From Anaeramoeba ignava BMAN (taxonomy: Eukaryota > Protista > Anaeramoebae), in assembly GCA_028826165.1 (NCBI GenBank), contig JAPDFW010000075.1, positions 248,001-312,000 on the forward strand: a stretch of 64,000 nucleotides of DNA, read 5' to 3'. The first letter of the stretch is position 1; every line of letters begins with the position of its first letter. Below are positions 8,396-61,293 of the stretch, one piece after another. The notes below the pieces were generated by a model, which was not told the origin of the DNA, did not search any database, and saw nothing but the letters and a program-made list of their open reading frames with translations. The position numbers and the translations under genes were made by a program.

Positions 8396-8588
8396 TTTAA
8401 AAATATAAAAAAAAATAAAATAAATGAAAGAAAGAAAAAAATGAAAAATGAAAAAATGAAATTTTCTTTTTTGGAATTTTAATTTTGATTTTAATTTTAA
8501 TTTTAATTTTAATTTTAATTTTAATTTTAATTTTAATTTTAATTTTATTTTTGGAATTTTAATTTTGATTTTAATTTTAATTTTAATT

Positions 8589-10361
8589 TTAATTTTGATT
8601 ATTAAATTTTTTAATTAATAAATCAAATAAATTTGGATTTGTTTGATTTAATTGAAAATAATCAATTCCAATTTGAATTTCATCAATTATTTCTTTTGTA
8701 ATTTTAATTTCATTTTTGATTTGATTTGAATAAATCCAATATTCAAATATTTGAAATGATTTATTACTTAATTCACTATAATCTGTAACTTTATTAGAAG
8801 TATCATTTGTTACAGATAAAAACATTCCTCGATATAATTCACTTCTCATTATTAATATTAATTTTGGAAATTTATATTGTTTTTCTTTTCTTTCAATTAT
8901 AAAATCTTTTTCATTTTCATTTTCATTTTCATTTAAATAAATTCTTTTCATTGTTTCTTCAATTTTTTCATTTGAATTTATAATTTCTTTAATTTCAGAA
9001 TATAATTTTGGATTTATTTTGGAATTATTTGAATAAATCATTTCAAATATTTGATTTGATTCTTTAATTGATTTTTTTGAAATAATTTCTTGAAGTTTTT
9101 CAATTTGATTTTGATTTTGATTTAATCTATATTTCAATATTAATTTATGAGCTTCAATTATTTCTCCATTTTTGGTTTTAAATGAAATATTGCAAAATTC
9201 TTTTCTTCTAAATAATTTTATCAAATCTTCTTCAAGATTGGAAAAAGGAGGAGGAGAATAATAAAGAAATGTTTTGTTAATACCACAAGAAATATGATAA
9301 TTGGAAATATCTTCATTAAATCTTAATTTAGGAAGTTCAATTTGAATTGGAATATCTTCTTCTCCTATATCTTCATTTCCTAATTCACCATAATAATTAT
9401 TTCCAAATCCGATCAATTTTAAATTAGAAATTAAAATCAAAGTATGGGCATATCCAACAGAAATTTCAAGAATATTATCATCATTTTCAAATAAAGATGA
9501 TTCAATTTCAGTAAATTCATAAGTATGCTCATCAAAAATTCCAAGTCCATTATATTGATAGTTTCCACATGAATAAAGTTTTCTTTTTGGATTTTCATTT
9601 TCAATCAACATTATTGAATGAGAGTATCCACATTGAATATCAATTATTTTACCTTTTGGAATATTTTGGATTTTGGTTAATTTTTGGATTTTTGTTTCTT
9701 CTTTTCTTGATTCTCCTAATCCAAGTTGACCAAATTCATTATCTCCGCATCCAAATAATTCTTGATTTGAATTTAAAAGAAAAACAGATTGTGAAGCAAT
9801 TCCTGAAAATATTTTAGAAACATTTTTCATCATTAAAATTGGTTTTTTTGTTTTAAGTGTTTTAGAATCAAAACCAAGTTGATCATTATAATTTGAACCA
9901 ATTCCATAAGCATTTTGATTTGAAGTTAATAAGTAAATTGAACGAGATCCAGAAACAATATTTTGAATTATTCTATCATTTTTATCTTCAATTAATGATG
10001 AAATATTGATAAATTTATTTGGATTTTTTGGATTAATATCATCTCCTTTGGCAAATACATTTCCTTCTTTTGTTAAAATAGCTTCATTTTCATCGCCAAC
10101 AGTTACTTTTTGAATATTTTCAATTTGAATTTCTTTAGGATTTTGATTTGAATCATTTTCACTTAAATATTCTATTGCTTTTCCATTTTTAAAAAGGAAA
10201 ATTGTTGAAAAACCTGATGATGAAATTTGTTTAATTTGTTTTTCATTTTCATTTTCATTTTCATTTTCAAATTTAAATTGAATTGGTTCTGTTATTTCTT
10301 CTGGTTTATTTTTGATAAGAATTGGATATTTATTGAAACCAAAAAATAAACAATCATTCAT
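8589..10361 (-). CDS. RCC1-repeat beta-propeller + tandem BTB/POZ protein, 590 aa, intronless
   Basis: RCC1 repeats (GCGDNEFGQLGLG, CGYSHS, VGYAHTL, GNNYYGELG); BTB motifs FCNISF..IEAHKLILKYRL and KDFII..KLILIMRSELYRGMF. Confidence 0.88.
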   Translation of the reverse strand: MNDCLFFGFNKYPILIKNKPEEITEPIQFKFENENENENEKQIKQISSSGFSTIFLFKNGKAIEYLSENDSNQNPKEIQIENIQKVTVGDENEAILTKEGNVFAKGDDINPKNPNKFINISSLIEDKNDRIIQNIVSGSRSIYLLTSNQNAYGIGSNYNDQLGFDSKTLKTKKPILMMKNVSKIFSGIASQSVFLLNSNQELFGCGDNEFGQLGLGESRKEETKIQKLTKIQNIPKGKIIDIQCGYSHSIMLIENENPKRKLYSCGNYQYNGLGIFDEHTYEFTEIESSLFENDDNILEISVGYAHTLILISNLKLIGFGNNYYGELGNEDIGEEDIPIQIELPKLRFNEDISNYHISCGINKTFLYYSPPPFSNLEEDLIKLFRRKEFCNISFKTKNGEIIEAHKLILKYRLNQNQNQIEKLQEIISKKSIKESNQIFEMIYSNNSKINPKLYSEIKEIINSNEKIEETMKRIYLNENENENEKDFIIERKEKQYKFPKLILIMRSELYRGMFLSVTNDTSNKVTDYSELSNKSFQIFEYWIYSNQIKNEIKITKEIIDEIQIGIDYFQLNQTNPNLFDLLIKKFNNQN

Positions 10362-10553
10362 TTTTGAAAAAGAAAAAAATGAAAAAAATGAAATTTGGAA
10401 TTTTAATTTTAATTTTAATTTTGATTTTAATTTTAATTTTAATATTAATTTTAATTATTAATTTTAATTTTAATTTTGATTTTAATATTAATTTTAATTT
10501 TGATTTTAATTTTGATTTTAATTTTGAATTGAATTTTGAATTGAATTTGAATT

Positions 10554-12372
10554 TTAATTATTAAATTTGTTAATTAATAAATCAAATAAATTTGGATTTG
10601 TTTGATTTAATTGAAAATAATCAATTCCAATTTGAATTTCATCAATTATTTCTTTTGTAATTTGAATTTCATTTTTGATTTGATTTGAATAAATCCAATA
10701 TTCAAATATTTGAAATGATTTATTACTCAATTCACTATAATCTGTAACTTTATTAGATTTGTCTTCTGTTACAGATAAAAACATTCCTCGATATAATTCA
10801 CTTCTCATTATTAATATTAATTTTGGAAATTTATATTGTTTTTCTTTTCTTTCAATTATAAAATCTTTTTCATTTTCATTTAAATAAATTCTTTTCATTG
10901 TTTCTTCAATTTTTTCATTTAAATTTATAATTTCTTTAATTTCAGAATATAATATTGGATTTATTATTCTGTTTGAATAAATCATTTCAAATATTTGATT
11001 TGATTCTTTAATTGATTTATTTTGAAATAATTTCTTGAAGTTTTTCATTTTGATTTTGATTTTTGATTTTGATTTAATCTATATTTCAATATTAATTTAT
11101 GAGCTTCAATTATTTCTCCATTTTTGGTTTTAAATGAAATATTACAAAATTCTTTTCTTCTAAATAATTTTATCAAATCTTCTTCAAGATTGGAAAAAGA
11201 AAGAGGAGAATAATAAAGAAATGATCTATGATATCCACAAGAAATATGATAATTGGAAATTTCTTCATTAAATCTTAATTTAGGAAGTTCAATTTGAATT
11301 GGAATTAATTGTATTTCTTGTGTATTTCCTATTCCTAATTGACCAAATTCATTATATCCAAATCCAATTAATTTCCCTTTTTTGGTTAAAATCAAACTAT
11401 GAGTAAATCCAACAGAAAAATCAAGAATATTATCATCATTTTCAAATAAAGATGATTTGATTTCAGTAAATTTATAAGTTTCTTCATCTTTATCAAGTCC
11501 ATTATCTTGATAAAATCCACATGAATAAAGTTTTCTTTTTGGATTTTGATTTTCATTTTCATCTTCATTTTCAATCAACATTATTGAATAGTCAATTGCA
11601 CATTGAATATCAATTATTTTACCTTTTGGAATATTTTGGATTTTGGTTAATTTTTGATTCTTGTTTCTTCTTTTCTTGATTCTCCTAATCCAAGTTGACC
11701 AAATTCATTATATCCGCATCCAAATAATTCTTGATTTGAATTTAAAAGAAAAACATGAATTGAACCAGTTCCTGAAAATATTTTAGAAACATTTTTCATC
11801 ATTAAAATTGGTTTTTCTGTTTTTGAAAGTGTTTCAGAATCAAAACCAAGTTGACCATAATAATTTGAACCAATTCCATAAACATTTTGATTTGAAGTTA
11901 ATAAATAAATTGAAAATCTTCCAGAAACAATATCTTCAATTATTCTATCATTTTTATCTTCAATTAATGATGAAATATTGATAAATTCTTTTGAATTTTT
12001 TGGATTAATATTTTCTCCTTTGGCAAATACATTTCCTTCTTTTGTTAAAATAGCTTTATTCCAACCACCAGAAGATACTTTTTGAATATTTTCTTCAATT
12101 TGGATTTTTGAAGGATTTTGTTTTGAATCATTTTCACTTAAATATTCTATTGCTTTTCCATTTTCAAAAAGGAAAATTGTTGAATATTCTCCTGTTGAAA
12201 TTTGTTTAATTTGTTTTTCATTTTCATTTTCATTTTCATTTTCATTTTCATTTTCATTTTCATTTTCATTTTCATTTTTAAATTTAAATTGAATTGATTT
12301 TGTTATTATTTTTGGTTTATTTTTGAAAAGTTTTGGTGTTTCATTTAAACCAAAAAATAAAATTTCATTCAT
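10554..12372 (-). pseudogene. Second RCC1-BTB-BTB paralogue broken by two 1-nt indels (~11656, ~11062); pseudogene or sequencing error
   Basis: ORFs 11647-12372, 11045-11581 and 10554-11048 align colinearly with 8589-10361; indels lie in or next to homopolymer runs. Confidence 0.75.
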
Positions 12373-49488: not shown

Positions 49489-49650
49489 TTCTTTTAAAAA
49501 TAAATGAAAATCAAAAAAAAATAAAAAAATGAAAAAAAAAATGAAAAAAATTTTATTTTCATTTTTTTTTTCAAAATTAAATTAAAACTTTAAAAACAAA
49601 TTTAAAAACAAATTTAAAAATTAAAAAATTAAAAATTTAAAAATTTAAAA

Positions 49651-51121
49651 ATGGAAATTGATTATTTCCTTGTTCTTGATTTAGAAGCAACTGTAAAAAT
49701 TAAAATTAAAATTAAAATTAAAATTAAAATTAAAATTAAAATTAAAATTAAAATTAAAATTAAAATTAAAATTAAAATTAAAAATGAATTAAATAGTGTG
49801 GACCTGGTATTTATGAAAATGTTGAAATTATTCAATTTTCTGTTGTTGTTTTAAATCTCAAAAATAATTTAATTGAAAATAAATTTGATTCTTATAGTAA
49901 AAATTTATTAATTTAATGAAAAAACAAAAAAATCCAAAATTTATTCCTATTATTTTATTATTTATTAGTTAAACCAATTATTCATCCAAAATTAACACAC
50001 TTTTGTTATAAATTAACTAAAATTACACAAGTATTTATTCAAAATAAAAATTCAAAATAAAAATTCAAAATAAAAATTCAAAATTTTTAAAATAAAAAGA
50101 AACAAGTTGATAATTCACAAATATTTAAAGAAGTTTTAATAAAATTTGAAAAATGGATGATAGAAAATGAATTTATTAAAAAAGATGGAACAAAAATAAA
50201 AAAATTTCATTTTTTAACATTTGGACCTGATGATTTTAGAAAATTTTTATTAACTCAATTAAAAATTTCACAAATTAAATCAATTCCAAGTTATTTCAAT
50301 TATTTTTTTGATTTCCAAAAATATTTCAAATTCAAAAATCAAGAAAAACAATCAAGAGGACTTAGCAAGTAAATTATATATTTTTTGAATATAATATTAA
50401 TAAATATTAATAAACTAAAATTAGTTTATTAACATATTATGGATTAGATTTTATTGGACAAGCACATAATAGTTTATATGATTGTATTAATACAGCAAGA
50501 ATTATTCAAAAACTTAATAATGAAATACCATTTAAAATAACTGAAAATGATTTAGATTCTATTTTTAGTAAAACAAAAAATTCAAAATCAAAGAAAACTA
50601 ATTTAATTGAAAATCAAAATCAAAATCAAAATCAAAATCAAAATCAAAATCAAAATAAAATTCAAAACCAAAATCAAATTCAAATTCAAAACCAAAATCA
50701 AAACCAAAATCAAATTCAAAATCAAAATCAAATTCAAAATGAAAATAAAATTCAAAACCAAAATCAAATTCAAAATCAAAATCAAATTCAAAATGAAAAT
50801 AAAATTCAAAACCAAAATCAAAATCAAATTCAAAATCAAATTCAAATTCAAAATGAAAATAAAATTCAAAACCAAAATCAAAATCAAATTCAAAATCAAA
50901 ATCAAAATCAAAACCAAAATAAAATTCAAAACCAAAATCAAAATCAAAATCAAATTCAAAATCAAATTCAAATTCAAAATCAAATTCAAATTCAAAATCA
51001 AAATCAAAATCAAAATCAAAATCAAAATCAAAATCAAAATCAAAATCAAAATCAAAATCAAAATCAAAATCAAAACAAAACAGAAGAAATACAAAACGAA
51101 ACTCAAAATCAAAACTATTAA
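49651..51121 (+). CDS. ERI1-like DEDDh 3'-5' exoribonuclease, copy A, with NQ-repeat tail; exons 49651-49692, 49797-49896, 49969-50030, 50100-50368, 50425-51121
   Basis: YFLVLDLEATC, EIIQFSVV, IKPIIHPKLTHFCYKLTKITQ, TFGPDDF, GLDFIGQAHNSLYDCINTARI (D-E-D-H-D catalytic set). Confidence 0.85.
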
Positions 51122-51709
51122 ATTCAAAAATAAAACTATTAAAATCAAATTCAAAACTATTAAAATCAAATTCAAAACTATTAAAATCAAATTCAAAATT
51201 ATTAAAATCAAAATCAAAACAAATTTAAATAGAAAATAGAAAATAGAAAATAGAAAATAGAAAATAGAAAATAGAAAATAGAAAATAGAAAATAGATGAA
51301 AAGTCTAATAAATATTAATCTAATAAAAAAATTGTTTTCAATAAAATGATCAAGTTAAAATAATTATTCAATTTAAATAAAAGCAAAAGAAAAACATTTT
51401 TGAAATTTAATTTTAAATTTAATTTTAAATTTGGAATTTTGGAATTGAATTTGATCAAAATTGTCTACTTTTTTATTTTGATCATTTTCTAATAATTTTT
51501 TAATTTATAATAACTTTTTATTAATTTTTAATTTAAAAAAAATAAAAAGTCCACTTTTTTTTGATATTTAAAAAATTTATTTTCATTTTTCATTTTTCAT
51601 TTTTCATTTTTTTCTTTTTATTTTCATTTTTTTTTTCAAAATTAAATTAAAACTTTAAAAACAAATTTAAACTTTAAAAATTAAAAATTTAAAAATTAAA
51701 AATTTAAAA

Positions 51710-52840
51710 ATGGAAATTGATTATTTCCTTGTTCTTGATTTAGAAGCAACTGTAAAAATTAAAATTAAAAATAAAAATATAATTAAAATTAAAATTAAAA
51801 TTAAAATTAAAATTAAAATTAAAATTAAAATTAAAATTAAAATTAAAATTAAAATTAAAATTAAAATTAAAATTAAAAATAAAATTAAAATTAAAATTAA
51901 AATTAAAATTAAAATTAAAATTAAAATTAAAATTAAATTTAAAATTGAAATTAAAATTAAATTTAAAAATGAATTAAATAGTGTGGACCTGGTATTTATG
52001 AAAATGTTGAAATTATTCAATTTTCTGTTGTTGTTTTAAATCTCAAAAATAATTTAATTGAAAATAAATTTGATTCTTATAGTAAAAATTTATTAATTTA
52101 ATGAAAAAACAAAAAAATCCAAAATTTATTCCTATTATTTTATTATTTATTAGTTAAACCAATTATTCATCCAAAATTAACACGATTTTGTTATAAATTA
52201 ACTAAAATTACACAAGTATTTATTCAAAATAAAAATTCAAAATAAAAATTCAAAATAAAAATTCAAAATTTTTAAAATAAAAAGAAACAAGTTGATAATT
52301 CACAAATATTTAAAGAAGTTTTAATAAAATTTGAAAAATGGATGATAGAAAATGAATTTATTAAAAAAGATGGAACAAAAATAAAAAAATTCCATTTTTT
52401 AACATTTGGACCTGATGATTTTAGAAAATTTTTATTAACTCAATTAAAAATTTCACAAATTAAATCAATTCCAAGTTATTTCAATTATTTTTTTGATTTC
52501 CAAAAATATTTCAAATCCAAAAATAAAAGAAAATATCGAATAGGACTTAGCAAGTAAATTATATATTTTTTGAATATAATATTAATAAATATTAATAAAT
52601 AAAATTAGTTTATTAACAGATTATGGATTAGATTTTATTGGGCAAGCACATAATAGTTTATATGATTGTATTAATACAGCAAGAATTTTTCAAAAACTTA
52701 GTAACGAAATACCATTTAAAATAACTGAAAATGATTTAGATTCTATTTTTAGTAAAACAAAAAATACAAAGAAAACAAAAAATAATTCTAATTCTAATTC
52801 TAATTCTAAAATCAAAATTAATGAAATATTTTATTTATAA
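51710..52840 (+). CDS. ERI1-like DEDDh exoribonuclease, copy B; exons 51710-51751, 51982-52081, 52154-52215, 52285-52553, 52609-52840 (probably continues into the RRM region via a 1-nt indel near 52810)
   Basis: Near-identical to copy A with the same four intron positions. Confidence 0.82.
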
Positions 52841-54159
52841 TGAAGATGAAATTGAGAAAGATGTTATTGTTATAAGTAACCTTCCTTTTTCATTAACAGA
52901 AACAGAACTTAAAGAAGAAATTTCTAAATTTGTGGGAGTGTAAAAATTTAAAAACAATTTAAAATATAAAACAAGAAATTTATTAAATTATTATCTTTCT
53001 AAAAAGGGAAAATGTTCTTCTTTGTCAAAGAGATGGAAAACCAACTGGAAATGGATATGTTCATTTAAAAAATTCTTCAGATACACAAAAAATAATTAAA
53101 TTATTAAATCAAACAAGATTTTTTGGTCGAATAATTAGAGTTGAAATGGCGAAAAAAAATTCAAAATCAAAGAAAACAAAAAATCCAAAATCAAAAAAAT
53201 CTCAAAATCAAAATCAAAATGGATCTGAAAAAAAAAAAAGTAAAACTGGAATTCATGTTTCAAATTTATCTTTTGAAATGAAAGATGAAGAATTTAAGAA
53301 AATTTTTGAAAAATTTCAAGTAAAAGAAGCAAGAATTGCAAGAAATAAAAATGGGAAAAGTAAAGGATTTGGATTTGTTGAATTTGAAACAGAAGAAGAT
53401 CAAAAAGAAGCTTTGAAACTTAATGGAACTGAATTTTTTAATCGAAAAATTGGGATTCGAATATCTTTTGAAGAATCTGAAGAAGAAAATAACAAAACAG
53501 AAATTGTTTCAAATCAAAATCAAAATCAAAATCAAAATCAAAATCAAAATCAAAATGAAAATCAAAATCAAATTCAAAATCAAAATCAAAATCAAAATGA
53601 AAATGAAAATGAAAATGAAAATGAAAATGAAAATGAAGATGAAAATGAAGATGAAAATTCAAATTCAAAATCAAATTCAAATTCAACATCAAGATTTAAT
53701 CCAAAATCAAATTCTGATTCAAATTCAAATTCAACATCAAGATTTAATCCAAAATCAAATTCAAGATTTAATCCAAAATCAAATTCAAGATTTAATCCAA
53801 AATCAAATTCAAGATTTAATCCAAAATCAAATTCAAGATTTAATCCAAAATCAAATTCTGATTCAAATTCAAATCCAACATCAAGATTTAATCCAAAATC
53901 AAATTCAAATTCAATTTCAAATTCAAGATTTAATCCAAAATTAAATTCAAATTCAAATTCAACATCAAGATTTAATCCAAAATCAAATTCTGATTCAAAT
54001 TCAAATTCAAGATTTAATCCAAAATCAAATTCAAGATTTAATCCAAAATCAAGATTTAATCCAAAATCAAATTCAAATTCAAATTCAACATCAAGATTTA
54101 ATCCAAAATCAAATTCAAATTCAAATTCAACATCAAGATTTAATCCAAAATCAAATTAA
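52821..54159 (+). CDS. Two-RRM RNA-binding region with NQ/NE tract and SRFNPK repeats; exons 52821-52939, 53007-54159
   Basis: RRM1 VIVISNLPFSLTETEL..TGNGYVHL; RRM2 IHVSNLSFEM..KSKGFGFVEF (RNP2/RNP1). Confidence 0.8.
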
Positions 54160-54390
54160 AATCCAAATTCAATTTCAAATTCAAAATCAAAATCAAAATC
54201 AAAATTCAATTTCAAATTCAAAATCAAAATCAAAATCAAAATCAAATTCAAATTCAAATTCAAATTCAAATCCAAATTCAACTTCAACATCAAAATCAAA
54301 ATCAAGATTTAATCCAAAATCAAATTCAAGATTTAATCCAAAATCAAATTCAAGATTTAATCCAAAATTAAATTAAAATTTAAAATGGAG

Positions 54391-54419
54391 AATGAGGAAA
54401 AAAAAAATGAAAAGAAATT
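54391..54419. repeat. Left copy of perfect 29-bp direct repeat AATGAGG(A)10TGAAAAGAAATT flanking the ankyrin-BTB gene
   Basis: Identical to 57915-57943. Confidence 0.8.
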
Positions 54420-54493
54420 TTTGCTTTTTGAATGAATTAATTTGTTTCTGGAAAAAAATTCAATTAAGGATAAAGAAATTTTTTGATTTCAAA

Positions 54494-57400
54494 TCAATTC
54501 AAAATTAAATCAATAATTGAATTTTGATTTAATTGATAATAATCTTTTAAATCTGAAAATTCTTCATAATTTTCTTTTTTAATCTTATTTGATTCAAATT
54601 CATCATGATAAAGAAAGTAAATGAATTGATTTAATGTTGAAAATGATTTTCCTGAATAATCATGAACTTGATTTGATGAATCTTGAACACTTAAAAACAT
54701 TCCTTTGAATAATTCACTTCTTATAATTAATATTAATTTATGAACTTTGATTGATTTTTCTTCTTTTTGATTTTCTTTTTCTTCTTGATAAATTATTGTG
54801 AAATCTTTTGTTGATTCTTGTTGATATAATTGTTGAAAATCTTTTAGAATTCCTTTTCTTCCTTTTTTATTTTCAATCCATTTTGAATCAAATCCAATTT
54901 CTTGAAATATTTCTTCAATTTTTTCATCTTCATTTTCATCTTCATTTTCATTTTCATCTTCATCTTCATCTTCATCTTCATCTTCATCTTCATCTTCATC
55001 TTCATCTTCATTTTCATCTTCATCTTCATTTTCATCTTCATCTTCATTTTCATCTTCATTTTCATTTTCATTTTCATTTTCATCTTCATCTTCATCTTCA
55101 TCTTCATTTTCATCTTCATTTTCATCTTCATTTTCATTTTCATTTTCATCTTCATTTTCATTTTCATCTTCATCTTCATCTTCATCTTCATTTTCATCTG
55201 AGAAAAAATTGAAAAAATGATTAAAATTAGGAAATCCAGTATAAAGAAAATTAAGAGCAATTCGAACATCTTCTTTGGATTTCTGTTGACAAATATTGAT
55301 TAATCTTTGTAAAATTGAATTATCATTATTGAATCTTGTTAATAAAATCAATTTATGAACATAAAATTTGAAACCATTATTTGATTGAATTTGATAATCT
55401 GAAAAATTGTCTTTATCATTTGAAATCAATAATTTGTTCATATCTTGATTGATTGAATAAATTTTTGAAAATAAATCAATAAATTCTTTTGTGATTTGCC
55501 GTTTTTCCAATTTAAAAACATTTGCATCATTCATCAATAATAATTGAATTAATTTTTGATTTTGGTTTTTAATTGATATTGAAAGTGCTGTTCGATTTCC
55601 ATCCCACCCTGTTGTTTTTGCATTAATATCAATTCCTTTTTCAATCAAATATTGGATAATTTCAAGTGATGAATTATATTGGCAAGCAAAATGTAAAGCT
55701 GTTTCATTTGAAATTGTTTTTTCATTAATATCAATTCCTTTTTCAATTAAATATTGAATAATTTCAAATGATGAATTTGGATTGGAACAAGCAAAATGTA
55801 AAGCGGTCATTTGAAAGTTTGGGCGTATACATGCATATGTATCTGTTTTTACATTAATATCAATTCCTTTTTCAATCAAATATTTGATAATTTCAAATGA
55901 TATATTTTTATTTAGGCAAGCAAAATGTAAAGCTGTTTCATTTGAAGTTGTTTTTGAATTAATATCAATTCCTTTTTCAATCAAATATTTGATAATTTCA
56001 AATGATGAATTTGGATTGGAACAAGCAAAATGTAAAGCTGTTTCATTTGAAATTGTTTTTGAATTAATATCAATTCCTTTTTCAATTAAATATTGGATAA
56101 TTTCAAATGATATATTTTTATTTAGGCAAGCAAAATGTAAAGCTGTTTCATTTGAAGTTGTTTTTGAATTAATATCAATTCCTTTTTCAATCAAATATTT
56201 GATAATTTCAAATGATGAATTTGGATTGGAACAAGCAAAATGTAAAGCGGTCATTTGAAAGTTTGGGCGTATACATGCATATGGATCTGTTTTTGAATTA
56301 ATATCAATTCCTTTTTCAATCAAATATTTGATAATTTCAAATGATATATTTTTATTTAGGCAAGCAAAATGTAAAGCTGTTTCATTTGAAATTGTTTTTG
56401 AATTAATATCAATTCCTTTTTCAATTAAATATTGAATAATTTCAAGTGATGAATTATATTGGCAAGCAAAATGTAAAGCTGTTTCATTTGAAATTGTTTT
56501 TGAATTAATATCAATTCCTTTGGAAATCAAATATTGGATAATTTCAAGTGATGAATTATATTGGCAAGCAAAATGTAAAGCTGTTTCATTTGAAGTTGTT
56601 TTTGAATTAATATCAATTCCTTTTTCAATCAAATATTTGATAATTTCAAATGATGAATTTGGATTGGAACAAGCAAAATGTAAAGCGGTCATTTGAAAGT
56701 TTGGGCGTATACATGCATATGTATCTGTTTTTACATTAATATCAATTCCTTTTTCAATCAAATATTTGATAATTTCAAATGATATATTTTTATTTAGGCA
56801 AGCAAAATGTAAAGCTGTTTTATTTTGATTTGTTTTTGAATTAATATTAATTCCTTTGGAAATCAAATATTTGATAATTTCAAATGATATATTTTTATTT
56901 AGGCAAGCAAAATGTAAAGCTGTTTCATTTGAAATTGTTTTTGAATTAATATCAATTCCTTTTTCAATCAAATATTGGATAGTTTCAAATGATATATTTT
57001 TATTTAGGCAAGCAAAATGTAAAGCTGTTTTATTTGAAGTTGTTTTTGAATTAATATCAATTCCTTTTTCAATCAAATATTTGATAATTTCAAGTGATAT
57101 ATTTTTATTTAGGCAAGCAAAATGTAAAGCTGTTTCATTTGAAGTTGTTTTTGAATTAATATCAATTCCTTTTTCAATCAAATATTTGATAATTTCAAAT
57201 GATATATTTTTATTTAGGCAAGCAAAATGTAAAGCTGTTTCATTTTGATTTGTTTTTGAATTAATATTAATTCCTTTGGAAATCAAATATTTGATAATTT
57301 CAAGTGATGAATTTGGATTTGGATTTTGACAAGCAAAATGTAAAGCTGTTTTATTTGAAATTGTTTTTGAATTAATATCAATTCCTTTTTCAATCAAATA

Positions 57401-57868
57401 TTTGATAGTTTCAAATGATATATTTTTATTTAGGCAAGCAAAATGTAAAGCTGTTTTATTTGAAGTTGTTTTTGAATTAATATCAATTCCTTTTTCAATC
57501 AAATATTTGATAATTTCAATTGAATTTTCTTTGTTTAAATGAATCATTGAATAATATAAGATTGATTTTTGTTTATTATCTGTTGAATTGATTGAAATTC
57601 CATTTTCAATCAAATATTGAATAATTTCAATTCTTGAATTGTTTATAATTGAAATATGTAATGAATTTCTTCCCATTTTATCAATTGAATTTATTTTTAT
57701 TCCTTTTGAAATCAATAGTTTAATCATTTCAAGTGAAACTTGTTTTTCGATTGCAAAATGTAAAATTGGTTTGTTTTCTTTTTCTTTTTCTTTCTCTTTT
57801 TCTGAAATGGATTCAATTTGTTTCAATGATTCAATATTATTTTGTTCAATAATTTCAAAAATATTCAT
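54494..57868 (-). CDS. Ankyrin-repeat (~20 repeats) + tandem BTB/POZ protein, 1124 aa, intronless
   Basis: Repeated TALHFAC..IIKYLIEKGIDINSKT; BTB motifs FSDYQI..FYVHKLILLTRF and KDFTII..VHKLILIIRSELFKGMF; E/D/N acidic insertion. Confidence 0.92.
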   Translation of the reverse strand: MNIFEIIEQNNIESLKQIESISEKEKEKEKENKPILHFAIEKQVSLEMIKLLISKGIKINSIDKMGRNSLHISIINNSRIEIIQYLIENGISINSTDNKQKSILYYSMIHLNKENSIEIIKYLIEKGIDINSKTTSNKTALHFACLNKNISFETIKYLIEKGIDINSKTISNKTALHFACQNPNPNSSLEIIKYLISKGININSKTNQNETALHFACLNKNISFEIIKYLIEKGIDINSKTTSNETALHFACLNKNISLEIIKYLIEKGIDINSKTTSNKTALHFACLNKNISFETIQYLIEKGIDINSKTISNETALHFACLNKNISFEIIKYLISKGININSKTNQNKTALHFACLNKNISFEIIKYLIEKGIDINVKTDTYACIRPNFQMTALHFACSNPNSSFEIIKYLIEKGIDINSKTTSNETALHFACQYNSSLEIIQYLISKGIDINSKTISNETALHFACQYNSSLEIIQYLIEKGIDINSKTISNETALHFACLNKNISFEIIKYLIEKGIDINSKTDPYACIRPNFQMTALHFACSNPNSSFEIIKYLIEKGIDINSKTTSNETALHFACLNKNISFEIIQYLIEKGIDINSKTISNETALHFACSNPNSSFEIIKYLIEKGIDINSKTTSNETALHFACLNKNISFEIIKYLIEKGIDINVKTDTYACIRPNFQMTALHFACSNPNSSFEIIQYLIEKGIDINEKTISNETALHFACQYNSSLEIIQYLIEKGIDINAKTTGWDGNRTALSISIKNQNQKLIQLLLMNDANVFKLEKRQITKEFIDLFSKIYSINQDMNKLLISNDKDNFSDYQIQSNNGFKFYVHKLILLTRFNNDNSILQRLINICQQKSKEDVRIALNFLYTGFPNFNHFFNFFSDENEDEDEDEDENENEDENENENEDENEDENEDEDEDEDENENENENEDENEDEDENEDEDENEDEDEDEDEDEDEDEDEDENENEDENEDEKIEEIFQEIGFDSKWIENKKGRKGILKDFQQLYQQESTKDFTIIYQEEKENQKEEKSIKVHKLILIIRSELFKGMFLSVQDSSNQVHDYSGKSFSTLNQFIYFLYHDEFESNKIKKENYEEFSDLKDYYQLNQNSIIDLILN

Positions 57869-57914
57869 TTTTCTTTTAATTCTTTATTTCAAAATGAAAA
57901 AAAAATGAAAAAAA

Positions 57915-57943
57915 AATGAGGAAAAAAAAAATGAAAAGAAATT
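57915..57943. repeat. Right copy of the 29-bp direct repeat
   Basis: Identical to 54391-54419. Confidence 0.8.
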
Positions 57944-57951
57944 AACCGTTA
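57944..57951 (+). promoter_or_regulatory. AACCGTTA Myb-type motif 214 nt upstream of the NEK ATG
   Basis: Same octamer and almost the same spacing as upstream of TOP2. Confidence 0.4.
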
Positions 57952-58157: not shown

Positions 58158-61100
58158 ATGGATGATTATCAATTATTAAAGAAAATTGGAGAAGGAAGTT
58201 ATGGAGTTGTATATCTTGTTCGATCAAAAAAAACTGGTGGAATGAGTGTTATAAAAAAAGTATCATTAAAAGATATGAGTGAGAAAGAAAGAAAAAAAGT
58301 TCATAAAGAAGCAAGAATATTACAAATGCTACATCATCCAAATATAGTTTCTTGTATTTATTTATTTTAAAAAAATTTTTGGAAAAATTTTCCGATTTTT
58401 AATTTTTATTATTTTTATTTGACTTTGATTTGAATATTTTTTAAATTTTGAATTGAATTAAATTATAAATAAAATTATAAATAAAAATATAAATAAAATT
58501 ATAAATTAAATTATAAATAAAATTATAAATTAAATTATAAATAAATATAAATAAAATTATAAATAAAAATATAAATAAAAATATAAATAAAAATATAAAT
58601 AAAATTATAAATAAAATTATAAATAAAAATATAAAATAAATTATAAATTAAATTATAAATTAAATTATAAATTAACAAAATATAAATTAAATTATAAATA
58701 AAATTATAAATTAAATTATAAATTAAATTATAAATTATAAATAAAAAATTATAAATAAAATTATAAATAAAATTATAAATAAAATTATAAATAAAATTAT
58801 AAATTAAATTATAAATTAAATTATAAATAAAATTATAAATTAAATTATAAATTAAATTATAAATTAAATTATAAATTAAATTATAAATTAAATTATAAAT
58901 AAATTATAAATTAAATTATAAATAAAATTATAAATCAAATTATAAATAAAGTTATAAATTAAATTATAAATTAAATTATAAATTAAATTATAAATAAATT
59001 AATTTATAAATTAAATTATAAATAAATTTATAAATAAAAATATAAATTAAATTATAAATTAAATTATAAATAAAATTATAAATAAAATTATAAATTAAAT
59101 TATAAATAAAATATAAATTAAATTATAAATTAAATTATAAATAAAATTATAAATAAAATTATAAATAAAATTATAAATAAAAATAATAAATTAAATTATA
59201 AATAAAATTATAAATTAAATTATAAATAAAATTATAAATAAAATTATAAATAAAATAATAAATTAAATTATAAATTATAAATTAAATTATAAATTAAATT
59301 ATTAATAAAATTATAAATTAAATTACAAATTAAATTATAAATAAAAATATAAATTAAATTATAAATTAAATTATAAATTAAATTATAAATTAAATTATAA
59401 ATAAAATAATAAATTAAATTATAAATAAAATTATAAATAAAATAATAAATTAAATTATAAATTAAATTATAAATTAAATTATAAATAAATTAATTTATAA
59501 ATTGAATTGTAGATTATGATAGTTTTGAAGATCCAGAAACAGGATCTTTCTGCTTAGTAATGGAATATGTTTCAGGAGGAGATTTAAGAATGAAAATCAA
59601 AGAAAAACAAGACCAAGGAGAATATTTTACAGAAGAAGAAATATATACAATTTTAATACAATTAATATCAGGATTAAAAGAAATTCAAGATCACAAAATA
59701 ATCCATCGGGATTTAAAAAGTGCAAACATATTTATAAGCAAAAAAGGACTTTTAAAAATAGGAGATTTTGGGATTTCAAGGATTTTATCAAACACATATG
59801 AAAAGGCAAAAACACTAATAGGGACACCTTATTATATAAGCCCAGAAATACTTGAGAATAAACCTTATTCTTTTCAGTCGGATATATGGTCTTTAGGAGT
59901 TGTAATTTACGAGATTTGCCATCTCAAAAGACCTTTTGAATCAGATAATATTTATGGATTAGTTCTCAAAATTCTCAACTCTGAACCCCCTTCTTTGCCA
60001 AGTTTTTACGCAAAAGATTTGCAGGATTTTATTCTTTCGTTCTTGCAAAAAGACCCTCAAAAAAGACCCACAATCACTCAAGCATATGAATCTCCCTTTA
60101 TTCAGTCTCTAAGCCAGAAATACACTTCATCTATAATGTTTAAAATCAATTTATCCAATGCTTTTAATAAAAATCCTGATAGTCATCATAACCCAAAGTC
60201 AAATCAACGTTCTCATAAAAATGTCTTCAAGACAAAATCAAATCGAAAGAAATTTCATCAAACTCTTTCTCCAGTTCATGTTGTAAAAATGAATGATTTG
60301 CAAAACTCAAAACCTATTTCTCAGTTTCATTCTGAAAATCATAAACTAAGAAATCAACGAGCACTTCGACCAATTGATATAAATTCAAATTATCCAAATT
60401 ATCCAAATTATTCAAATCAATCCAAAAATACAAATTATCAAAATTTGCCCAAATTTCAAAACAAATTTCAAAACAAATTCCAATCAGAAATGAAACCAAA
60501 AATCACCACAAACCATTATTTAATAAATCAAGGAGTTGAACCAAGATTATCAATTATAAACGATTCCACTGAAAACTTTCACAATATGACAAATAGTCAA
60601 TCCGAACTAAGTATTCCCAGATCACATTTAAGTCCATATTATAACCAACAACACAATTACAACTCTCCTATTTTACAAGAAGAAACAAGACTTTCATCGT
60701 CAATATCGTTTCTAAAACCAATCCAAATTTATCAAGATCAAAACCCAAGTCCGTATATTAATTCATATCAAAAAGAATCTCCAGAAAATAAAGAAAAAGA
60801 ACAGAAACTTCAAATACAACAAATCCAAGTTAAAGATCGAGAAAGATTGTTTCGAATCAATTCCTATTTGGAAAAAAAAGAAAAAATGGTTGGAAAAAAG
60901 CAAAAAAATCATTTGCCAAAAATACTTTTTTCTGAACAAAAAGATGAACAAATGGAAAAATTTTCTGGTGAAAAAAAATCAATCAAAAATTTTCCTTCAG
61001 AAATTCTTGACCAAACTTCATTATCTCCAGATGAAAGTATTCATAATAAATTTGATAAAATTCGATATTTTATTGAATCACAAATTGGATCTGATTTATT

Positions 61101-61293
61101 TTCTCAAGTTCATCAGAAAATTTTTGATTATCAAAAATATCAAAATTCTGAAAATTTTTCAGAACAAAATGAATTTTTATCTGAAATTTCAAAACTTATG
61201 GATGGAAAGTTTGATTGGATTCCTTTAATTGAAAGACTTGTTCGTTGTGAGATTTTTGCTAATCAACAAATGAATATGGATATTTTTAAATGA
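58158..61293 (+). CDS. NIMA-related (NEK) Ser/Thr kinase; exons 58158-58353, 59513-61293
   Basis: IGEGSYG, VIKKV, HHPNIVS-YYDSF, IIHRDLKSANIF, KIGDFGISR, GTPYYISPE, SDIWSLG; NEK1/11-like C-terminal helical segment. Confidence 0.93.
58480..59500. repeat. 12-bp intronic repeat ATAAAT(T/A)AAATT in the NEK intron
   Basis: Direct reading. Confidence 0.9.

Follow-up and report, generated by a model that had tools for sequence, protein, structure and literature searches.

Introduction

A short direct repeat around a gene can be compared with several described systems. L1-type target-primed retrogenes are single intronless genes inside a direct repeat of tens of bases; tandem arrays under unequal crossing-over place the start of one unit directly after the end of another; and templated insertions, as made by polymerase-theta end joining or by microhomology-mediated break-induced replication (MMBIR), leave, at a deletion scar, a short stretch copied exactly from sequence close by. 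Here we describe a locus in the genome of Anaeramoeba ignava BMAN that has something of each: an intronless ankyrin-BTB gene bracketed by two perfect copies of a 29-nucleotide (nt) sequence. It lies in a stretch of 64,000 nt (assembly GCA_028826165.1, contig JAPDFW010000075.1, positions 248,001 to 312,000), hereafter the window, whose first letter is position 1. The initial annotation of the locus read the repeat as a target-site duplication and the gene as a mobile cassette, brought in by retroposition or another copy-and-paste route. Our analysis indicates that the feature is real and that its explanation is most likely ordinary: a relic of tandem duplication that mimics a target-site duplication.

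The likeness to L1-type retrogenes lies in the single intronless gene, the length of the repeat and a genome that harbors young long interspersed nuclear elements (LINEs) of the APE type. Unlike processed retrogenes of that kind, however, the locus has neither poly(A) nor a parent gene, it includes promoter sequence, and the LINEs of the genome have (AAAATC)n tails; moreover, the repeat appears homologous to the promoter or spacer of the gene's own family rather than to unrelated target DNA. With tandem arrays it shares a head-to-tail family, a unit start that seems to follow directly upon a unit end, and a comparable 53-nt stub at another array. It differs from typical array ends in that one full unit is left, beside a partial unit so short (29 nt) that it mimics a target-site duplication. 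As in templated insertions, nearby sequence is repeated exactly over a short length at a possible deletion scar, but here the template would lie at a distance of 3.5 kb and the junctions show no microhomology.

Results and Discussion

The repeat is exact and confined to one locus

The sequence AATGAGGAAAAAAAAAATGAAAAGAAATT occurs on the forward strand at 54391-54419 (copy 1) and again at 57915-57943 (copy 2), with no mismatch between the two copies. Its edges are sharp: the bases adjoining copy 1 differ from those adjoining copy 2 on both sides. No other copy with two or fewer mismatches is present in the whole assembly (42.8 Mb, 147 contigs), and the six further matches, each with three mismatches, are A-rich look-alikes. 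Not one of 100 dinucleotide-preserving shuffles gave a match to the 29-mer; a chance origin of the repeat is rejected. Elsewhere in the window the isolated two-copy exact repeats that passed a filter on their flanks are no longer than 24 nt (the longest being 22-24 nt) and resemble simple sequence; the same filter excluded the 29-mer pair too, apparently because of short words common to its A-rich flanks.

Enclosed between the copies are 3495 bp, all of which can be assigned to the ankyrin-BTB gene on the minus strand: a 3′ untranslated flank of 74 nt (54420-54493), a single open reading frame (ORF) of 1124 amino acids (54494-57868), and a 5′ leader or proximal promoter of 46 nt (57869-57914), with two TCATTTT initiator-like motifs spaced from the ATG in the usual way. 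Read on the gene strand, the 3′ flank ends in AAAAAGCAAA and is followed by copy 1, which reads AATTTCTTTTCATTTTTTTTTTCCTCATT; copy 2, at the other end, is contiguous with the leader and forms the distal portion of the promoter. Much of the initial annotation is thereby borne out. The repeat is perfect, it surrounds little beyond an intronless gene with short untranslated regions, it contains an initiator (Inr)-like motif on the gene strand (CTTTTCATTTTTTTTTT), and the interval is free of transposase, reverse transcriptase (RT) and poly(A) run. Among the circumstances that would together speak against an insertion, the same annotation had named a 29-mer that is a common genome-wide promoter string; the 29-mer as a whole has no other copy at fewer than three mismatches.

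Both inner boundaries resemble native promoter or spacer

Core promoters of Trichomonas vaginalis are initiator-driven, with an Inr of the form TCA+1, and also make use of an M3 motif. Sequences of similar appearance occur in A. ignava: most ATGs are preceded by TCATTTT-type motifs, and the sequence AACCGTTA (57944-57951), which abuts copy 2 in the divergent intergenic region between the ankyrin-BTB gene and a kinase gene, fits the Trichomonas M3 core-promoter consensus. The arrangement TAACGGTT-N(4-16)-TTCATTTTT is very rare, with seven genome sites against one for the control.

Joined on the gene strand, the final 10 nt of the 3′ flank (AAAAAGCAAA) and copy 1 make up AAAAAGCAAAAATTTCTTTTCATTTTTTTT. 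At up to two mismatches this string has 50 sites in the genome, compared with two for the reversed control, and in five fetched examples it sits 7-40 nt or more upstream of the ATGs of unrelated genes. Because the string recurs before ATGs, the boundary 54419|54420 reads as one ordinary core promoter, not as a joint. More generally, a core-promoter string in two parts, AAAAAGCAAAAATT-(T-rich)-TCATTTTTTTT, recurs throughout the genome; its window instance occupies 54400-54429 on the minus strand, and we know of no description of the upstream half, AAGCAAAAA.

At the opposite boundary, copy 2 and the leader together spell the pattern TTCA-T10-CC-TC-A-T9-CATTTT (57902-57935). With small changes of spacing allowed, a genome-wide search returns no sites for this pattern beyond the present one and the promoter of a paralogue (C24:165296). 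A “virtual spacer”, composed of the 3′ flank, the 29-mer and the leader, was also aligned with a real spacer of the paralogous array at C24:677k: the match extends over 47 columns with one mismatch and three gap columns, spans both boundaries, and scores 71, whereas the two sides as they stand today score 59 and 52. These comparisons suggest that both inner boundaries of the repeat are native promoter or spacer rather than insertion joints. Boundaries of this kind fit a repeat with a period of 3524 bp, not a target-site duplication, and the contiguity of copy 2 with the leader, the promoter string completed by copy 1 and the virtual spacer all point to a unit start directly after a unit end.

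The gene belongs to a family of tandem arrays

The ankyrin-BTB family has hundreds of members, dispersed over many contigs and arranged mostly in head-to-tail arrays (on C24, C60, C70, C87, C126, C55, C120 and others), with spacers of 40-220 nt that are rich in T-runs and TCATTTT motifs. Every member inspected is an uninterrupted ORF. Since the whole family is intronless, the intronless state of the gene at 54494-57868 carries no weight in deciding how it reached its present position. No close relative, with the same N-terminus, linker and BTB domain, occurs elsewhere in the window; the gene is a singleton there.

Three segments of the gene were compared with the genome. The best paralogue reaches 85% identity over the 3′ end with its flank, 80% over the middle linker and 77% over the 5′ end with its leader, and the assembly holds no near-identical donor or parent copy above 85%. 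At a neutral divergence of at least 15%, the probability that all 29 positions stay identical is roughly 0.85^29 (about 0.01). With no change in 29 nt set against at least 15% divergence, the repeat must be much younger than the split of the gene from any surviving paralogue.

Flanking duplications had been put forward as a possible feature of the family. In a small sample, both flanks of six other family genes, the longest string common to the upstream and downstream flanks of a gene is just 12-16 nt, which is within the null of 10-22 nt given by the longest strings shared between flanks of different family genes. The exception is one 29-nt match of pure (AAAATC)n. Since these six genes are without flanking repeats, the 29-mer is peculiar to the locus and not a family trait; the idea of a family-wide feature thus finds no support in this sample, which is not a genome-wide one.

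What does occur elsewhere is an array that ends in a stub. In the two-gene array at C60:1091344-1094930 the last gene is followed by 53 nt, 52 of which are identical to the internal spacer; this stub comprises the spacer and the first two codons of the next unit, with ATG changed to ATA, and is a precedent for an array-end stub. In the same pair the 3′ ends of the two genes are 99% identical, and the upstream gene has a different N-terminus. The searches also returned mirror-image pairs of matches, with equal scores on opposite strands (C1:1585692-1603306 with C1:1700356-1717362, and C69:327357 with C69:382902), which suggest large inverted segmental duplications that carry ankyrin-BTB genes.

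A putative array remnant with a promoter stub

From these comparisons of sequence we consider it about an even proposition that the locus consists of one array unit and the first 29 nt of a deleted next unit. The 29-mer would be a piece of the ankyrin-BTB gene's own promoter or spacer, and the interval 54391-57943 a head-to-tail repeat with the 3524-bp period, comprising one full unit and 29 nt of a second. Originally the gene would have been followed downstream, on its own strand, by one or more tandem sisters, such as most members of the family retain. A recent deletion or unequal exchange would then have taken the sister away, sparing the first 29 nt of its promoter. Copy 1 would be what is left: an orphan initiator-type promoter stub that points into the 3′ end of the neighboring RRM-domain gene and abuts the minisatellite tail of that gene. 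No ORF lies behind copy 1. A former second unit at this site, its deletion, and a stub with no function of its own are the most likely elements of such a history; at most, transcription antisense to the RRM 3′ end could start from the stub.

Deletion of the sister on the spot accounts both for the missing close paralogue and for the youth of the repeat. Recombination in the region and in the family is active, as seen in ankyrin units that are up to 90% alike and in two tandem duplications within the window. The initial annotation had offered the collapse of a tandem array as its alternative; given the native boundaries and the arrayed family, that alternative fits the evidence better than the mobile cassette.

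Several points weigh against the array remnant. Past the 29 nt, no remains of a second unit are present in the assembly. Two events are needed: the unit must first have been duplicated, and a deletion must then have begun, by chance, 29 nt inside the second copy of it. The matching sequences are all AT-rich and of low complexity, so that homology across the boundaries is suggestive and deserves no more than moderate weight; the shorter pattern TTCA(N)T10CC, for instance, has 129 occurrences in the genome, and the match to the longer one is suggestive, not proof. Finally, the three-gene array on C70 has no stub, from which it appears that stubs are occasional and not a rule.

It is conceivable, though improbable in our estimate, that there never was a second gene and that copy 1 is a templated patch: 29 nt copied from the promoter 3.5 kb away during break repair or a template switch in replication. 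The patch could have arisen by templated insertion, of the polymerase-theta type or mediated by microhomology, or by conversion over a very short tract. A patch has the merit of requiring a single event, and it agrees with the appearance of copy 2 as native to the promoter and with the fact that just 29 nt are duplicated, the rest of a second unit being unseen. Yet neither end of the patch shows microhomology, the template would be unusually distant, and the fit of the 3′ flank plus copy 1 to the promoter string and to the array spacer would have to be chance.

Array-derived DNA might instead have been moved in from elsewhere, either as a linear piece (a unit plus 29 nt) captured between the RRM and kinase genes, or as a unit-length circle that integrated, so that the redundancy is simply the period of the array. 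Such a transfer would explain why the gene is a singleton far from other close members of its family, and it agrees with inner boundaries that look native and with the alignment to the spacer of a paralogous array. We nonetheless regard it as unlikely. A source array should keep near-identical sister units, and none was found; a fragment just 29 nt above unit length is a coincidence of about 1%; and integration of a circle by homology requires prior identity over 29 nt at the target, whereas the genome holds no other copy with fewer than three mismatches.

Frequent as they are in this family, tandem arrays are difficult to assemble correctly; several tandem units could have been collapsed by the assembler, or the repeat could be a consensus error. 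This we consider very improbable. The contig is long, both junctions lie in unique sequence, and four DNA runs of the same organism contain 38-52% of the words sampled from the stretch. A collapse, moreover, would still leave a genuine unit plus stub, and would modify rather than replace the reading of the locus as an array remnant.

LINEs and the case for insertion

In a true insertion the 3495-bp cassette, either a LINE-made copy of an mRNA or a DNA fragment received at a 29-nt staggered break, would have duplicated a single-copy target between the RRM and kinase genes through gap filling. The repeat itself is what one would look for: perfect, sharply bounded, unique, and placed around just one gene with short flanks. 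That the gene is alone in the window while its family is dispersed over many contigs also accords with insertion, as does the existence of young APE-type LINEs with intact ORFs. Despite this we think an insertion of this kind has only a slim chance of being correct.

A recent copy-and-paste event should leave a near-identical parent, and the lack of one argues against insertion: no donor exceeds 85% identity although the repeat has accumulated no change in 29 nt. At the 3′ junction (...CATTCAAAAAGCAAA|repeat) there is neither a poly(A) run nor an (AAAATC)n tail, the 3′ end being AAAAAGCAAA. The insert begins upstream of two initiator motifs, which means that promoter sequence is included. Terminal inverted repeats are absent: one end of the insert reads TTTGCTTTTTGAATG... 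and the other ...ATGAAAAAAA, neither being an inverted form of its partner. Both inner boundaries look like native promoter or spacer, the six other family genes sampled show nothing comparable in their flanks, and the lack of introns is uninformative in an intronless family.

The genome does contain the machinery for retroposition, the LINE RT and endonuclease genes for which the initial annotation had proposed a search. There are 17 matches to RVT_1, eight of them with ORFs of at least 800 amino acids. One LINE family combines an APE endonuclease, an RT and a zf-RVT domain; its copies are 97-99% identical, and for this reason the family is taken to be young. Two full copies of about 4.5 kb (C64:584420-588931 and one on C42) have both ends in common and terminate in (AAAATC)n at the 3′ end. 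These elements suit a role in moving the cassette poorly: the tails are (AAAATC)n rather than poly(A), and no flanking duplication of at least 8 nt surrounds either of the two full copies.

Two specific vehicles were considered, and both fit poorly. A LINE-mediated processed retrocopy would be in keeping with the RT and endonuclease genes and with the exact 29-nt flanking duplication, although the latter is promoter- or spacer-like in sequence; the missing tail and the missing high-identity parent with introns speak against it. A cut-and-paste DNA transposon with the gene as cargo is disfavored by the absence of terminal inverted repeats and by a 29-nt duplication that is too long, being far longer than the target duplications of known DNA transposon superfamilies.

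With no donor, tail, inverted repeats or family repeats, with unsuitable LINEs and with native boundaries, the mobile cassette is thus disfavored. The related suggestion that the insertion site supplied a promoter is weak, as the 46-nt leader inside the insert already has two TCATTTT motifs. What would be left is a self-contained cassette that reached the RRM-kinase interval by some copy- or cut-and-paste route not yet described, which duplicated a target of about 29 nt; this seems to us a long shot. Such a cassette could, for example, be a unit or circle excised from an array and then taken up at a long staggered break. Were it true, cassette insertion would be a mechanism for the dispersal of a large receptor-like family through the Anaeramoeba genome, and the locus would be of greater importance, as a pointer to a so far unrecognized mechanism by which entire genes move.

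If, on the other hand, the array remnant is the correct reading, the locus adds a further trace of the birth-and-death turnover by which tandem duplication, unequal exchange and deletion shape the large ankyrin-BTB family of A. ignava. It also calls for care, as an array reduced to a single unit can be mistaken for an insertion with a target-site duplication. Two by-products of the analysis are perhaps more useful than the repeat itself, namely the two-part core-promoter string and the young LINE family with (AAAATC)n tails.

The ankyrin-BTB protein, neighboring genes and other features of the window

The published description of the Anaeramoeba genome makes no mention of ankyrin, BTB or retrotransposons (PMC11550330). 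Pfam matches to the ORF comprise Ank_2 (3.8e-150) and BTB (2.8e-13, amino acids 1011-1114), as expected of an ankyrin-BTB adaptor, with some 15-18 ankyrin repeats and the BTB domain at the C-terminus. On the minus strand the ankyrin repeats extend over ∼55529-57763, in units of 102/105 nt that are up to 90% alike, and the BTB domain lies at ∼54527-54838. Between them an acidic tract, (TTCATC)46 at 54923-55199, encodes a long Asp/Glu/Asn-rich stretch within the ORF; it separates a BTB-like region, for which there is no Pfam call, from the recognized BTB domain. Exact-protein look-ups gave no record for this ORF or for the second exon of the neighboring kinase.

That kinase is NEK/CAMK-like and divergent from the ankyrin-BTB gene; the ORF of its second exon (59560-61293, forward strand), recognized by domain search, is 100% identical to a protein named by NCBI from Anaeramoeba ignava. 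Positions 58348-58383 mark the passage from its first exon into its intron. No synteny was found in A. flamelloides: the two kinase homologues are just 51-52% identical, too distant for a useful test, and their neighbors are a cullin, an MFS transporter and a PI3K gene.

On the other side the convergent RRM-domain gene (53146-54159, forward strand; ORF and domain search) has a tail made of a 24/42-nt minisatellite at 53508-54384. The minisatellite encodes the C-terminal (SNSRFNPK)n of the RRM protein, runs ∼220 nt beyond the stop codon and reaches to within ∼7 nt of copy 1. The two local tandem duplications of the window pair 49551-50632 with 51616-52818 and 8475-10269 with 10435-12244; they are 96% and 90% identical, and the second carries BTB-domain genes.

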